DNA from: Octopus bimaculoides
Lineage: Eukaryota
DNA: 64,000 nt
Assembly: GCF_001194135.2 (NCBI RefSeq)
Contig: NC_068988.1
Location: 55,055,551-55,119,550 of the forward strand
Direction: 5' to 3'
In this document: positions 34,387 through 40,400 of the stretch, one piece after another
How positions within the stretch are numbered: the first letter of the stretch is position 1
Layout: every line of letters begins with the position of its first letter
Made by a program: the position numbers and the translations under genes
The notes under the pieces: model-generated
What the model was told of the DNA's origin: nothing
The model's database searches: none
The model's input: the letters and a program-made list of their open reading frames with translations, nothing else

Positions 34387-34477
34387 TCAAGCTAAGTCAG
34401 TTACTGACGTGAGGTGATGTATAACACCAGCTCCAACAACATCAGAAATGGTATTCACAGTTACACCCAATCGATTC
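34387..34477 (-). CDS. SLC1A: SLC1-like exon 8 (91 nt; NRLGVTVNTISDVVGAGVIHHLTSVTDLA-stop, TM8)
   Basis: ttttatttcacag|G AAT CGA TTG GGT ... GCT TGA; aligns without gaps to DRLRTTTNVLGDSLGAGIVEHL. Confidence 0.92.
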
Positions 34478-37400
34478 CTGTGAAATAAAAAAGATAAAAA
34501 TCAAGTGTGGGGATATAGTTATACACATGTGTAAGATTTGTTAATTAAGTACCAAGTTATTAATTGATAAGACAGAAAAATTAAACTAAACGTTGTTCAT
34601 GTCTTTCCTTGAATGTGGTCTGTGATATTTGTCTGCATAACAGCTGCTCATTCTAAGTTGTGTGAGGATAATATTCCACTTTCAGTCATACTCAGGTTTC
34701 ACAGAGGTTAATATGATAGCTGATCTCAAAACGCTGAGCCTTACAAAGGAAATGACAAAAGACCGAGTAATGTGATGCATTGCAATACTGAAGAAAACCC
34801 CACACATCACAACAGAATTGATATCCTAAAACCAAAGTGCCATGTAAAAAGCATTGGTACTGGTGCTGGTGCTACATAAAACGCACTGGAGCTGGTGCCA
34901 TGTAAAAAAAAAAGCACTGGTGATGGTACCATATAAAAAGTGCTGGTGTCACATACAGAGCACCCAGGACATACTGTAAAGTGGTTGGCATCAAGAAGGA
35001 GATTCAGCTGTAAAAACTATGCCAGAACAAACTATGGAACCTGGTGCAGCCTCTGACCTTGCCAGTTCCTGTCAAGCCATCCAGCATGGGAAGCAGACAT
35101 TAAATGTTGATGATAATAATGATGATGATTTGGGGTAAGACACTTTGTTTAAGATTAAGATGTCATGTATTATAAGACATTTTGAAGAAAAGTGTGTCAC
35201 TTTCTACTTTTATGCAATTAAAGACCAATGGAATGGTCTAGTTTCACAGATGAAGAGCTCTAGATGACATCATTATTACTTTACTAGAAAATCGGCAGCT
35301 AATCTTTTTTTTTTTTTGCCTCTGATGTTATTTTATGTCCCTAATGTAGATACTTAATTGTAAGAGTCCAGACCACCTGAGTGAATACAAATACTTCAGT
35401 GTGGAATGACTCACCACTTCAAACAGCTGCAGCACTGTAAAAAGTGACAAGCAGTTTCCATTTTTCTTTAATTGACAATGCTTCATTTGAATTCTTCTGT
35501 GAGTTCAGATGGCTCTTCTTTTAATTCTGCTAGTACCACTTCAAACTAGACTGGAAAAAATGGCCTAGGGACAGATATTAGTGGGAAATTTGACTGGCGA
35601 CTGATGGTTGTTTTTGAAGTAAGAGAAGGAGAGAAAGCAAGTTTACTACGAAATAGAAGGAAGGATAAAGTTTCCATTTCAGGGGAGAGAACCACACAGG
35701 GTTTTTTTTTTTTCTCTATTGTTATTTTTATTGGTGGTAGTGGTGGTAGTGGTGGTAACGACGATGATGATAATTTTGTGGGGTCATTACATTTCTTAGG
35801 GACATTAATGTTACACGACTGAAGTAAATTAGCTTCACCTGGAATTTGAAACTTATCTAAGAATTTGATATGCCTGGAATCTATGTCTTAGTTAATGATG
35901 CTCTGTTAGAAATAATAGAATATTTCACTCCAGTAACCTACTCACAAGATCCAGTCAGCTGCCATAATTAGGGAGACATTTTCATTAGGGATACCAGCAA
36001 CTGTGAGGACAGCAAGGATACCCAGATTGCCATTTTGGGGTAGGTTTCTTGTACCAATTGATACAAGGGCCGATGTGATACTGAAACACAAACAGAAGAA
36101 TAAAATAACTGCAGTTTAATATTTCATATATACTTATTTGCATATTATTAACAGTCAACAAAGTGTTAAAGCAACAAAACAGTAAACAAGAACAATATAA
36201 AATATTTGAAAGATCAGGGATTTAATATTTCATGGCGTTTTAATTATACACAGACATGCAGGAAGTAAATAGACACTTTTAATTTTCAAAATTTCTGATC
36301 TAAGTGTCTTAATATGTTTTCAGCGGTGTAGAATTTACAATGTAATTATTTTTTTTCATTCCAGGTGCCATTATATTAAACATTTGTGAAGAATAACCAT
36401 GCCACGCATAAAAAATTCAGCAGAACTTGTCAGATTTTCAAAGAGGTATTGTTGGGCAATCTAAGGCTGGTCTAAGCCAGCAAAAAAATTGCCAGAAATC
36501 ATCAAATTCCTCTTGCTACTGTTAATAGAATTATAGTGCAATTCAAAAGCCAGGGAAAAGAATGTGTGTGTGTGTGTGTGTGTGTGTGTGTGTGTGTGTG
36601 TGTGTGTGTGTGTGTGTGTGTACATAGGAACATGAATGGGTGTGTGGTTAAAAAGTTTGCTTCACAACCACAGGGATTTTCAGTTCAGTCCCACTGTGTG
36701 GCATACTGGGAAAATGTCCTTTATTATAGTCCTGGGCCAGTCAATACCTTGTCAGTGGAGATTTAGTGAATAAAAACTGAAAGAAGCCTCTCATATATAT
36801 ATGTATGAGATGCTATAAAAAATTTCCTGGACAAGTTCTGTAGCTCTCCAACAGATGACAGCACATGGTTGTGTGTACAGTGAGAGCTAGTAGTGACCTT
36901 CATGAGGCAGTGTGCTGAGTGATATCATTGTGTTTACTTCTTCACAAGTTGTGAAATTTGTGATTTTATGATCATGTGTATGCTGTAGTCTGTGATTTTT
37001 GTCATGGACAGGAAGTTAGAACAAAGAGCCAATGTGAAATTTTACGTTAAACCTGGGAAGTCTGCTACAGAGACATTGAGCATGCTTCGGTAAGCTTATG
37101 GCAATGAGGCAATGAGTCGTATGCATTGTTTTGAGTGGCAAGAATGCTGGGTCTGGTGTATTCCTGTGCAAGGTGACTGTTTCAAAAGAGGTGGCATTAA
37201 AACTTAGGTAAATAAGTGATTTTTTATTAAACATAACTAGTCCGGGAATTTTTCTATACCTCCTCATGTGTGCATACATTTGGTCGAGTGTGTGTGTGTG
37301 TGTGTACAGACATCAGAAAGAGAAAGATAAGGAGGGAGGGTGGGAGGAAGAGAAAGAGGAGGGAAAAGGTGATAAGTACAAGATGACATTGCATTTGATC

Positions 37401-40400
37401 AGTCAAGTGTTTAAGATAATAAACAACCTCACCTGATAATTATCAACCTTCCAATTGTCAAGGGAACTCCTTCGTATTGTGCAATAAATATACAGGCTAC
37501 TGACTTGTACAAGGCCCCAGCATTAGTATTAATAATGGCCCCGAGGGGCAATGTGAGGCGAGTTACTTGATGATGGAGTCTTGCCTTGCATTCAACACAT
37601 TGTAACATCACAGGTAAGTTTGTAATACTGCAAGAAAATGGCACAAGATGAAAAATAAAACTGGATGAAGTATAACGACAGGAAGAAGGATCAACAGGGT
37701 TTTCATCATCATCATCATCATCATCATCATCATCATCATCATCATCATCATCGTTCAATGTCTGCTTTCCATGCTAGCATGGGTTGGACGATTTGACTGA
37801 GGACTGACGAACCAGGTGGCTGCACCAGGCTCCAATCTGATCTGGCAGAGTTTCTACAGCTGGATGCCCTTCCTAACGCCAACCACTCCAAGAGTGTAGT
37901 GGGTGCTTTTACATGCCACTGGCACAAGGGCTAGACTGGTGGTACTGGCAACAGCCACGCTCAAATGGTGTTCTTTTCTCTTTTTTTTTGAAAATTTTAT
38001 TACTGAACACGTTGTTGAAAATCTAAAACAAATTATTTTCAGAGCATGAGCAAAAACNNNNNNNNNNNNNNNNNNNNNNNNNNNNNNNNNNNNNNNNNNN
38101 NNNNNNNNNNNNNNNNNNNNNNNNNNNNNNNNNNNNNNNNNNNNNNNNNNNNNNNNNNNNNNNNNNNNNNNNNNNNNNNNNNNNNNNNNNNNNNNNNNNN
38201 NNNNNNNNNNNNNNNNNNNNNNNNNNNNNNNNNNNNNNNNNNNNNNNNNNNNNNNNNNNNNNNNNNNNNNNNNNNNNNNNNNNNNNNNNNNNNNNNNNNN
38301 NNNNNNNNNNNNNNNNNNNNNNNNNNNNNNNNNNNNNNNNNNNNNNNNNNNNNNNNNNNNNNNNNNNNNNNNNNNNNNNNNNNNNNNNNNNNNNNNNNNN
38401 NNNNNNNNTATATATATTTATTTATTTATTCTTCCCATAGGGGAAAGGCTTGAACAGAGAATATTTTTCTTCCTAAATATCTTTTAACTTTTACTTATTT
38501 CAGGTGGGAATTAGTGGTGGTCATACCTGCATGATGTAGCAAATGCTGTACATATACACAATGAGTTCTTGTAGAGAAATTTTACTGGGTTTTTCCGTGT
38601 CATCAGGAAATATACCAAGGGTAATAACACCAGCGCATAGCCTAAATGAGCAACCAAGGCTGTTCCTATGTACAGTGCCACCTGATGGAAAGCTGTGGAA
38701 GGTTCTTCCAATCCAATCATTGTACTAGTGAGCAAGAAAAATATTCCAATTGGAGAGAACCTAGGAAATCAGGTGAGAGAGAAAAAAAAAATTTTTTTAT
38801 TTAATTTATAACGGCAGAAGCAATATTAATACCAAAAGGCAATCATGATATCCAACTTAGTGTGGAAGTTATGTTAGAACAAGGAATATGGCATTATTTA
38901 TCATAAGGACTCATGGTGTTTAAAAGCACTTGCAATTGTATTGTTGACAGATGAGAATTGTCTGTTACAGCCACTGGAACTGCCAGATCATATGATTTCA
39001 CCCTGCTATGGCTTCCTCAGTGACAGATGCCAAGCAGTGGCATATCAGCCAAATCTCCCGTCAACAATATGTAGATTATCAGTGTCTATTCAGGCACTGG
39101 TATTGCAAACAACCAATGGGCTTATTAAAAGATACTCTGCATATTGTTGATGGGAGATTCAGCTGTTATGCTACTGCTGAACATCTGTCACTGAGGAACT
39201 TATAGCAGGGTGAAATTAAGTGATCTGGCAGTTCCAACAGCCATAGCAGACAGTTCTTGTCTGTCAACAATATAATTACAAGTGCTTTTATGCACCATGA
39301 GTTCTTATGAGAGATCATCTCAAAGTAAATAATGCAGTATTTTGTATCCTAGCATAACCTTCATATTGAGTTAATTTTCATAAATTAAAACACAAGATTT
39401 GTGTAAAATTCAAGCTGTCTGTGTTATCGTTGTTTAGTAGCAGGTCAGTACTGACAAAGCAAACCTACATTGAAAAATAGTCAACAAAGCCATTATGTCT
39501 AGTGAGAGGGTATGTATTTAGGACTATGTTATGTAATGTCTTTACTTTATTCAAGACACTACAATGTAATTTGAGGGACATTTTGCTCCAGTCTCACTGT
39601 ACACCACCCTAGGCAAGTGTCTTCTACTGTAGACATGGACCAGCCAAAGCCTTGTGAGTGGATTTGTGGGACAGAAACTGAAAGAAGCCCATTGTGAGTA
39701 CATGTGTATGTGTATTGTTGTTGTTGTTGAAATCAAGTTTGCTTTTTCCCCTTTTGGGGTTGATAAAAGAATTACCAATCCAGTGAGGTGGTTTAGTGAA
39801 TTTGTTAAAATATTGGCCAAGATGTCTTGCAGTGTTTATCCTGTTTCTTAGTGTTCTGATAGTGTAGCCTGCAATGACACTGATATCAAGCTGTATTGGC
39901 CCTGAAGTGATATCCTAACCCTTAGACAACATCAGTCATGAAGAGAGTGGAGACTTTCATGTATAGGAAATTAGACAGGAAAATACCTTTCCAAAACTTT
40001 TATATCCAGATGTAGATAAATAGTCAACAATAGGCGCAGGAGTGACTGTGTAGTAAGTAGCTTGCTTACCAACCACATGGTTCTGGGTTCAGTCCCACTG
40101 CGTGGCACCTTAGGCCAGTGTCTTCTACTATAGCCTCGGGCCGACCAAAGCCTTATGAGTGGATTTGGTAGACAGTGGTGGTAGTGAAGGAGGAGGAGTG
40201 GTTTTGTTCGGTATTGCCATCATCATCGTCTTCAACATTGTGGTAAAGAAGAAAACGAAGAAGAAGAACAACAAGAAGAAGAAGAAGAACAAGAACAAGA
40301 ACAAGAAGAAGAAGAGAAAGAAGAAGAAAAAGAAGATGTGTAACACGTAGGGGCTAGGCTCTCACAGTGGCTCAATAGACATGGAAAACATTATGTAATG

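Follow-up and report, generated by a model that had tools for sequence, protein, structure and literature searches.

Elevator transport tightly coupled to Na+, H+ and K+ has its textbook example in the SLC1 proteins, and its mechanism rests on a few near-invariant residues. The present analysis concerns a 64,000-nucleotide stretch of Octopus bimaculoides DNA (assembly GCF_001194135.2, contig NC_068988.1, positions 55,055,551 to 55,119,550 of the forward strand; hereafter the window), the minus strand of which carries an SLC1 gene in which the coupling residues have been exchanged together. The question raised by this locus is whether a gene so rewritten is alive and, if it is, what its product could move. 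The octopod SLC1 gene is a live gene, spliced, expressed and under purifying selection that is strongest on the rewritten segments, namely transmembrane segment 7 (TM7), hairpin 2 (HP2) and TM8, and it is best explained as an octopod-specific functional paralogue of the family.

Structure, expression and selection of the gene

The gene (Pfam SDF) comprises eight exons (E1-E8) on the minus strand, extending from 34387 to beyond 64000 and all bounded by GT-AG, which join within the window into an uninterrupted frame of 846 codons with neither stop codons nor frameshifts. The original prediction, made from the letters of the window alone, had placed an intact SLC1 gene at 34387-38760; the four intact, spliced exons that it described stand, but they are only the last four (E5-E8), encoding 217 residues or the C-terminal half of the protein, and four more exons continue to beyond 64000. 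These 217 residues match Pfam SDF PF00375 with E=2e-43 and 149 bits (cut-off 27.9), and the open reading frame (ORF) of E1 matches the same domain with E=7e-14. Exons E1-E4 were located by tblastn with the Argonauta and Octopus vulgaris proteins, combined with ORF inspection. The frame of E1 is still open at base 64000, the end of the window, and the true N-terminus of the protein thus lies outside it; the O. vulgaris orthologue of E1 is 1956 nt long and is preceded by two short coding exons. Two database proteins named O. bimaculoides are 99-100% identical to the translated exons. The exons, and the assembly gap between two of them, are as follows.

62516..64000, minus strand: exon 1 (partial), Ser/Asp/Glu-rich N-terminal extension, then TM1-TM3 (ORF, GT donor, RNA contigs)
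44428..44470, minus strand: exon 2, 43 nt, encoding RNIFPDNLMVACFKR (tblastn with the Argonauta protein, AG/GT boundaries, E1-E2 RNA joint in runs X1 and X2)
41578..41806, minus strand: exon 3, extracellular TM4b-c loop with N-x-S/T sites, poorly conserved (tblastn, AG/GT boundaries)
40465..40648, minus strand: exon 4, TM4c-TM5 (tblastn, AG/GT boundaries)
38527..38760, minus strand: exon 5, end of TM5, TM6 and first arm of hairpin 1 (HP1), ending in TAFATSC (ORF, splice sites, RNA joint to exon 6)
38058..38408, no strand: assembly gap of 351 N in the intron between exons 5 and 6, coding sequence unaffected
37433..37627, minus strand: exon 6, HP1 tip (SITNLP), HP1-TM7 loop and TM7 with the rewritten NMDGT region
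35946..36080, minus strand: exon 7, HP2 and start of TM8, ending in AADWIL with a split codon
34387..34477, minus strand: exon 8, TM8 and a very short C-terminal tail (…HHLTSVTDLA-stop; stop codon 34387-34389)

The stop position is common to the O. bimaculoides, O. vulgaris and Argonauta proteins. At the other end, the extension that precedes TM1 measures at least 345 residues in the window and ~550 in O. vulgaris; it is acidic (rich in Ser, Asp, Thr, Glu and Asn, net charge -31), and no Pfam domain was found in it. It holds a unit of ~49 residues that occurs twice, from residues 45 and 104 (31/49 identical), and a basic cluster, RKKIRK…KRKKR. Public annotations fragment the gene: O. bimaculoides has only models of 130 and 133 residues, while in O. 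vulgaris (OX597821.1, loci L002/L003) there are two split models, P0012 for the N-terminal part, which ends in ~87 residues foreign to the SLC1 protein, and P0002 for the C-terminal part without exon 6. The fragment models P0002, P0012, P0003 and P0004 are named ‘excitatory amino acid transporter-like’ or ‘glt-4’.

In O. bimaculoides, run X1 yielded an RNA contig of 513 nt that spans exon 6 without a mismatch; its two overhangs read in frame into E5, at its end, and E7, at its start. From the E5 side, X1 and three sister-species RNA runs (X2, X3 and X7) continue from 38527 into the first bases of exon 6. Because the RNA contigs join E5 to E6 directly, with no missing codons in the spliced contigs, and the alignment to human EAAT1 is ungapped over this junction, the gap at 38058-38408 hides no exon and leaves the frame undisturbed. 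The E1-E2 joint is present in RNA contigs of X1 and X2, one X1 contig linking 62516 to exon 2, and another RNA contig extends past 64000. In a sister species a single contig of 2396 nt has coordinates that fit E1-E6 exactly, with no extra exon and with 299 nt left for E7, E8 and a short 3' untranslated region. The spliced mRNA that had been suggested as a check is therefore documented at the E1-E2, E5-E6 and E6-E7 joints. Skipping of exon 6, as in model P0002, was sought in four RNA runs and was seen in none; exon 6 is intact in the O. vulgaris genome despite its omission from P0002, which is treated as an annotation artefact or a rare isoform.

Two irregularities were noted among the contigs. 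A candidate frameshift at 63039, where an X1 RNA contig lacks one A of an A7 run (GCAAAAAAATC, minus strand) at 15 nt from the contig end, was rejected: the O. vulgaris protein keeps the genomic frame at this point, and the 1-nt deletion is thus probably a contig-end or homopolymer error. In run X13, from one further octopod, the sole exon-6 contig (37646-37433) extends 19 nt past the acceptor into the intron, which could be unspliced RNA or DNA carry-over; its exon 6 differs at 10 nucleotides and at two amino acids (R->K and T->S), neither of which lies in the motif.

Selection was estimated as the ratio of nonsynonymous to synonymous substitution rates (dN/dS, Nei-Gojobori) over 278 codons aligned with the genomic locus of Argonauta hians (L001). 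The ratio is 0.17 with a dS of 0.97 (synonymous excess, Fisher p ~1e-27), and it is lowest in the rewritten exons (E6 0.069, E7 0.115), which show no amino-acid change at all against O. vulgaris. In four further octopod species, read from run contigs (three RNA runs and one run of unrecorded type), exon 6 differs by 3-10 nucleotides and 0-2 amino acids, none of them in the motif. Identity between Octopus and Argonauta follows the same order, with 0.84 for HP2, 0.81 for TM7 and 0.79 for TM8, against 0.66-0.72 for the scaffold helices (exon 4, 66%) and 0.39 for the extracellular loop. A dN/dS below 1 and conservation of the motif, both proposed as checks, were thus borne out, the motif being kept in Octopus and Argonauta with N/S and G/S variation. 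The claim that the gene is intact and no pseudogene is likewise upheld by the RNA contigs and by the ratio against Argonauta with its Fisher test (p=1e-27).

It is accordingly highly improbable, and largely refuted, that the locus is a decaying or non-functional duplicate or that its odd residues are assembly or annotation artefacts. Such an origin might be suggested by the fragmentary annotations of O. bimaculoides and O. vulgaris, by a gap-rich assembly (16 gaps in the window) and by apparently low expression, against which stand 846 codons without stop or frameshift in eight GT-AG exons, a conserved stop position, a confident fold prediction, dN/dS of 0.17 overall and 0.07 on the rewritten exon, and an RNA contig that agrees with the genome throughout exon 6. 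In the O. vulgaris genome exons 6 and 7 have identical amino-acid sequences, which shows that the substitutions are not assembly errors, a possibility that the original prediction had itself named as one that could overturn it; the rewritten residues recur in both genome assemblies, which are independent of each other, and in RNA from additional species.

Replacement of coupling and substrate-binding residues

In a phmmer search against PDB chains, the best sequence match of the octopod protein was human EAAT1 (7npw, E=2.7e-90), and the alignment is gap-free from TM4c to the end of TM8. The motifs located by this alignment are listed below.

62647..62664, minus strand: TM3 motif YYSVTS, Thr/Ser pair (GltPh T92/S93, Na3 ligands) kept
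37546..37566, minus strand: VTRLTLP, Arg equivalent to EAAT1 R388 kept
37516..37530, minus strand: NTNAG replacing NMDGT
37504..37506, minus strand: Lys codon at the EAAT1 E406 / EAAT3 E374 position (Tyr-Lys for Tyr-Glu)
36020..36055, minus strand: HP2 tip GTRNLPQNGNLG replacing GAAGIPQAGLVT
34441..34476, minus strand: TM8 NRLGVTVNTISD replacing DRLRTTTNVLGD

From EAAT1 to the octopod protein, TM7 changes from LPVGATINMDGTALYE to LPLGAIINTNAGALYK, HP1 from TSSSSATLP to TSCSITNLP, HP2 from SIGAAGIPQAGLVT to SIGTRNLPQNGNLG (tip AAG to TRN) and TM8 from DWFLDRLRTTTNVLGD to DWILNRLGVTVNTISD (DRLRT to NRLGV). In EAAT1 numbering these are S364C, S366I, A367T and T368N in HP1; T396I, M399T, D400N, G401A, T402G and E406K in TM7; A440T, A441R, G442N, A446N, L448N and T450G in HP2; and D476N, R479G and T480V in TM8. 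Residues S363, S365, R388, G394, N398, Y405, G447, D472, R477, N483 and D487 are kept. All substitutions listed by the original prediction for TM7, TM8, HP1 and HP2 were reproduced in the alignment to 7npw, the coordinates given for NTNAG (37516-37530) and for the Lys codon (37504-37506) are exact, and S365, N398, N483, D487, D472, R477 and R388 are indeed all kept. Its list of changed residues is correct throughout, but T480V and the HP2 changes A440T/A441R/G442N had not been noted. Among the kept residues, R388 is the one that we take to be the anion-pathway Arg of EAAT1; at the position of EAAT1 S103, presumably another anion-pathway residue, the octopod protein has Gly. As general background, ASCTs keep NMDGT and the Ala-Ala tip of HP2, with Gln at the E374 position, and a neutral residue replacing R447 gives a preference for neutral amino acids.

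The roles of the replaced residues are best described for EAAT3, in which D444 (D476 in EAAT1) binds the substrate amino group as well as the K+ that is counter-transported, the site for K+ being completed by T448 and by the carbonyls of HP2 residues 408, 409 and 411; the Ala-Ala pair 408-409, conserved in eukaryotes, allows the coordinating turn at the hairpin tip (PMC10160106). E374 (E406) is the proton carrier, which pairs with R447 (R479) when deprotonated and, when protonated, bonds the carbonyl of G415 and zips HP2; together, NMD, YE and DxxxDxxR constitute the ‘dancing motifs’ of EAAT3 (PMC10160106). Archaeal homologues carry Gln at the E374 position and need neither H+ nor K+, and GltPh and GltTk translocate empty (PMC10160106). 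D444 is essential for productive interaction with amino-acid substrates, and any substitution of it in EAAC1/EAAT3 abolishes amino-acid transport currents (PMC2151622).

In the octopod protein the residues that define an EAAT are replaced at each of these points. The NMDGT motif, of which the Asp is a Na3 ligand and the Met and Thr contact Na2 and substrate, is NTNAG in Octopus and NTSAG in Argonauta; in both O. bimaculoides and O. vulgaris as well as in Argonauta, Asn stands at the TM8 position D444/D476, whose Asp holds the alpha-amino group and K+; the TM8 Arg R447/R479, which holds the side-chain carboxylate, is Gly in Octopus and Ser in Argonauta; and the proton-carrier Glu E374/E406 is Lys while the HP2 Ala-Ala pair is Thr-Arg, introducing an Arg at the tip of the gate. 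In Argonauta, TM7 also has YK, so that the Lys at the E406 position is conserved, the HP2 motif GTRNLPQNGNIG shows a single difference (L->I) with an identical TRN tip, and TM8 reads NRISVTVNTMVD (NRISV). Judged from these sequences, the rewritten pattern is conserved, with the former Asp400 tolerating Asn or Ser and the former Arg479 tolerating Gly or Ser.

An ASCT is defined by a kept D444 and by the replacement of R447 with a neutral residue and of E374 with Gln; the R447 position is neutral here (Gly/Ser), but D444 is Asn and E374 is Lys. Of the features of a dicarboxylate transporter (DCT, as defined in PMC3737229), the neutral residue at D444 and the non-hydroxyl residue at T448 are present as Asn and Val, but the R447 that is kept for the second carboxylate is again Gly/Ser. 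By its residues, therefore, the octopod protein is a clear SLC1 member that departs from the definitions of EAATs, ASCTs and DCTs alike, save for the D444/T448 signature of the last. The earlier view, which excluded both a glutamate transporter and a standard ASCT, is reasonable and well supported, and the protein almost certainly has a different job, since the residues on which an EAAT depends (D444, R447, E374, NMD, T448 and HP2 Ala-Ala), as well as the D444 of an ASCT, are replaced, and published mutagenesis and structures bear on these very positions (PMC2151622, PMC3737229, PMC10160106).

The fold appears unaffected by these changes. An AlphaFold2 model built from a 35-sequence alignment reached a predicted local distance difference test score (pLDDT) of 79.6 and a predicted template-modelling score (pTM) of 0.75, and it displays the normal broken TM7, with helices interrupted at model residues 396-399, and both hairpins, HP1 and HP2, as expected of an SLC1 protein. 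The pLDDT falls below 50 at model residues 164-220, which correspond to the exon 3 loop. Foldseek gave target-normalised template-modelling scores (TMt) of 0.93-0.94 against intermediate-outward structures of ASCT2 and EAAT3, the top match being ASCT2 (8qrs, TMt 0.94). The octopod protein is best explained as one that keeps the trimeric elevator architecture with its ligand and ion chemistry replaced as a set. With human EAAT1-5 it has the same predicted fold in common, together with N398, Y405, D472, R477, N483, D487, R388, S365 and the TM3 Thr/Ser, whereas all three ‘dancing motifs’ are hit, M399, D400, T402, E406, D476, R479, T480 and the HP2 Ala-Ala/Gly are lost, and the C-terminal tail is very short.

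Relationship to other SLC1 proteins

A comparable exchange has been described in the mosquito protein CuqDCT, in which D444N and T448A confer selectivity for dicarboxylates and insensitivity to K+ (Wang et al. 2013, PMC3737229). EAAT3 engineered to D444S/T448A transports dicarboxylates, loses its response to K+ and displays a relatively larger Cl- current, and in CuqDCT the Asn at the D444 position lowers the affinity for L-Glu ~100-fold (PMC3737229). Like CuqDCT and AeaDCT, the octopod protein is metazoan and EAAT-derived, with D444N and a small hydrophobic residue at T448 (Ala in the mosquito, Val in the octopod). In contrast, CuqDCT keeps D440, R447, N451 and D455 of TM8, the only segment of it compared, where the octopod R447 is Gly/Ser; and the octopod protein goes beyond the D444/T448 pair by the change of NMDGT to NTNAG, by E374K, by the TRN tip of HP2 and by its huge N-terminal extension. 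Its ~35% identity to any other SLC1 and its long isolated branch indicate that it arose independently of CuqDCT.

ASCT1 and ASCT2 (SLC1A4/5) resemble the octopod protein in the small neutral residue at R447/R479 and in the absence of Glu at the proton-carrier position; they differ in that ASCTs keep D444, while it is R447 that is kept in CuqDCT and DctA (PMC3737229). DctA has a neutral residue at D444 (Ser) and Ala at T448, and the Gln at E374 of GltPh and GltTk, which lack H+ and K+ coupling, offers a possible analogy for the octopod Lys. These three proteins differ by an identity of 22-30% and by keeping R447 (PMC3737229; GltTk R401/D315 contacts), and Lys at the 374 position does not occur in them, as far as seen among the top matches.

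In an exhaustive HMMER search of 1.84 billion cluster representatives, the only matches above 90% identity were fragments of the orthologues from O. bimaculoides and O. vulgaris, and the next proteins, canonical and EAAT-like, reached at most 38%, with nothing between 97% and 38%; the Argonauta protein is 64-74% identical to that of Octopus. Neither this search nor word-indexed searches, including one with an Octopus+Argonauta profile, found an orthologue beyond Octopus and Argonauta, although proteomes of squid, cuttlefish and Nautilus may be absent or concealed within 50% clusters. A neighbour-joining tree places Octopus+Argonauta by themselves on a stem 0.62 substitutions per site long, followed by slower within-clade change (0.34), which fits a burst of change followed by constraint. 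No credible sister group was found in this tree, the nearest neighbours being centipede, rotifer-like, crinoid, nematode and crab proteins. Literature searches found no account of this octopus protein and no specific study of cephalopod SLC1.

The key motifs were tabulated for 147 aligned relatives, nearly all of them top-ranked search matches and cluster representatives. The full canonical key (NMDT-E / D-D-R-R-T-N-D) is present in 53 of the 147, and more than 10 have NMNGT with all else canonical, so that D400N alone is not remarkable. A minority is strongly rewritten, each in a different way, and the octopod combination of NT[NS]AG, YK, NR[LI][GS]V and the TRN tip occurs in none of the 147. 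Rewritten paralogues come from ticks, two bivalves, an oribatid mite, Limulus, a nemertean and the electric eel, and in the tree none of them groups with the octopod clade. The motifs of several are as follows.

Tick, P0109: NLDGT..A and DWIMNRCRT
Bivalves, P0142 and P0163: SANGS and SCNGG
Oribatid mite, P0161: HKTGT
Limulus, P0164: HMGGG
Electric eel, P0110: NKNGS

A further EAAT-like paralogue with rewritten motifs is P0123 (alignment A1). In hard ticks, a cluster of 37 members has Asn at the D444 position with Arg447 kept, which contradicts a 2013 statement that, the mosquito DCTs apart, every eukaryotic SLC1 protein conserves D444 and T448.

These comparisons bear on the notion that the octopod protein still transports an amino acid (or an amino-sulfonate or beta-amino acid) with shifted specificity, in the manner of an ASCT or of dEAAT2, the amino group resting on Asn476 and backbone carbonyls. 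The change of R447 to a small neutral residue (Gly/Ser) is an ASCT signature, S365 and N483, which bind the alpha-carboxylate, persist together with the Na1 ligands, and NMNGT variants do occur in otherwise canonical EAAT-like proteins. Such a transporter is nonetheless quite improbable: ASCTs and all characterised amino-acid-transporting SLC1 proteins keep D444, the substitution of which abolishes amino-acid transport currents in EAAC1/EAAT3 and, as Asn, lowers L-Glu affinity ~100-fold in CuqDCT, and a cationic amino group would be disfavoured by the two positive charges added within the pocket or close to it.

Possible functions and other features of the window

The function that we favour, with a probability of about 0.4, is that of a carrier, whether uniporter, exchanger or weakly Na+-coupled, which would work independently of K+ and H+ on an anion other than an alpha-amino acid, for example a mono- or dicarboxylate. 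With Asn at D444 and Val at T448, the alpha-amino group and the counter-transported K+ would no longer be held, and the change of HP2 Ala-Ala to Thr-Arg would dismantle the K+ site further. With Lys at E374 and Gly/Ser at R447, H+ coupling and the Glu-Arg switch would be gone while G415 is kept; the Lys could then serve as a permanent hydrogen-bond donor to the HP2b carbonyl, mimicking the protonated Glu or the archaeal Gln, so that the gate could close without H+ or K+. The only acidic Na3 ligand would be neutralised (D->N/S), the ligands of this site including T92 and S93 of TM3 in GltPh (PMC5110648). Since N483 and D487, as Na1 ligands, persist along with N398 and the TM3 Thr/Ser, a reduced or weakened dependence on Na+ is expected at most. 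The alpha-carboxylate ligands, HP1 Ser365 and N483, would persist, in a pocket that may gain both room (R479G, T402G) and two positive charges (the TM7b Lys and the HP2-tip Arg).

Several observations weigh against such a carrier. R447, the distal-carboxylate binder of CuqDCT, DctA and EAATs, is absent, and a dicarboxylate would need the new Lys or Arg in its place; the bulky Arg and Asn at the HP2 tip, where Ala and Gly are normal, might prevent normal closure of the gate. The D400 position is Asn in Octopus and Ser in Argonauta, and is thus not tightly fixed, and constraint is weaker in exon 1, where comparison with O. vulgaris gives a dN/dS of 0.46 over the extension and 0.40 over TM1-3. 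Expression appears low or restricted: RNA contig depths over the gene are 4-10x, and in samples of ~6% of three large O. bimaculoides RNA runs (X21-X23, X23 being compared with exon 6 only) no reads fell on exon 6 or on the coding part of exon 1.

In Octopus and Argonauta alike, D400N/S, E406K, D476N, R479G/S and A441R sum to a core charge of +4. Lys or Arg replaces Na+ in some LeuT-fold carriers. It is conceivable, if rather unlikely, that the octopod protein is an elevator with internalised coupling charges, in which tethered Lys and Arg residues would replace the co-ions and a non-amino-acid anion would be moved without Na+, H+ or K+ coupling. If true, the octopod protein would be the first SLC1 carrier of any metazoan to work independently of ions, and its substrate class would be new. 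That +4 is also the charge which a canonical EAAT takes up as 3 Na+ and 1 H+ is a curiosity, not evidence.

More doubtful than the favoured carrier, yet to be reckoned with, is a protein that does not transport at all but acts as an anion channel, uncoupled or modulated by a ligand, or else as a protomer with a regulatory or dominant-modifying role in homo-trimers or in hetero-trimers with canonical octopus EAATs, its acidic N-terminal tail serving as a signalling or anchoring module. An extension of at least 345 residues (~550 in O. vulgaris) is unusual for SLC1, and the anion-pathway Arg (EAAT1 R388) is kept along with the scaffold and trimerisation helices, whereas the anion-pathway S103 of EAAT1 is Gly. 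All three coupling motifs are gone, in line with the loss of coupled transport in EAAT mutants of D444, E374 or R447 (PMC2151622, PMC10160106), and EAAT3 D444S/T448A is the mutant with the relatively larger Cl- current (PMC3737229). What a pure scaffold role leaves unexplained is that conservation peaks in the segments of the substrate site and that dN/dS is lowest in E6 and E7, which argues against a dead, ‘scaffold-only’ site; a channel would be compatible with that conservation, as the elevator and gate would still be needed.

Whether as the anion carrier favoured here or otherwise, the octopod protein is a natural one, kept in both sampled octopod lineages (Octopus and Argonauta), in which the coupling residues were exchanged together while fold and site shape stayed constrained, and it may be viewed as a ready-made evolutionary ‘experiment’ on the purpose of each coupling motif. 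It is a candidate case, among metazoan SLC1 proteins, of a new class of substrate or a new mode of coupling, for which the mosquito DCTs are the only tested precedent, and, as an orphan, cephalopod-restricted membrane protein, of possible physiological interest. Automatic names such as ‘excitatory amino acid transporter-like’ mislead for this protein and for several tick, bivalve and Limulus paralogues.

No second SLC1 copy was found within the 64,000 nt of the window. The window does contain three remnants of mariner/Mos1-type transposases (Pfam Transposase_1, 2e-29 and 2e-14; HTH_48, 2e-18).

222-1097, minus strand: mariner/Mos1-type transposase remnant with an open frame of 291 residues
16409-16747, minus strand: mariner/Mos1-type transposase remnant, fragmented
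23751-24458, plus strand: mariner/Mos1-type transposase remnant, fragmented

The introns of the SLC1 gene are rich in microsatellites, with (ATG)n at ~37700-37760, (CA)n at ~36560-36620 and (TC)/(CA) tracts. In intron 1, immediately downstream of the donor of exon 1, a short T/G-rich repeat at 62454-62507 (…GTTTTGTTTTTGTTTTGTTTT…) has a contig depth above 2000x and takes the only reads that X21 and X22 gave; they reflect a dispersed repeat and not expression of the SLC1 gene.

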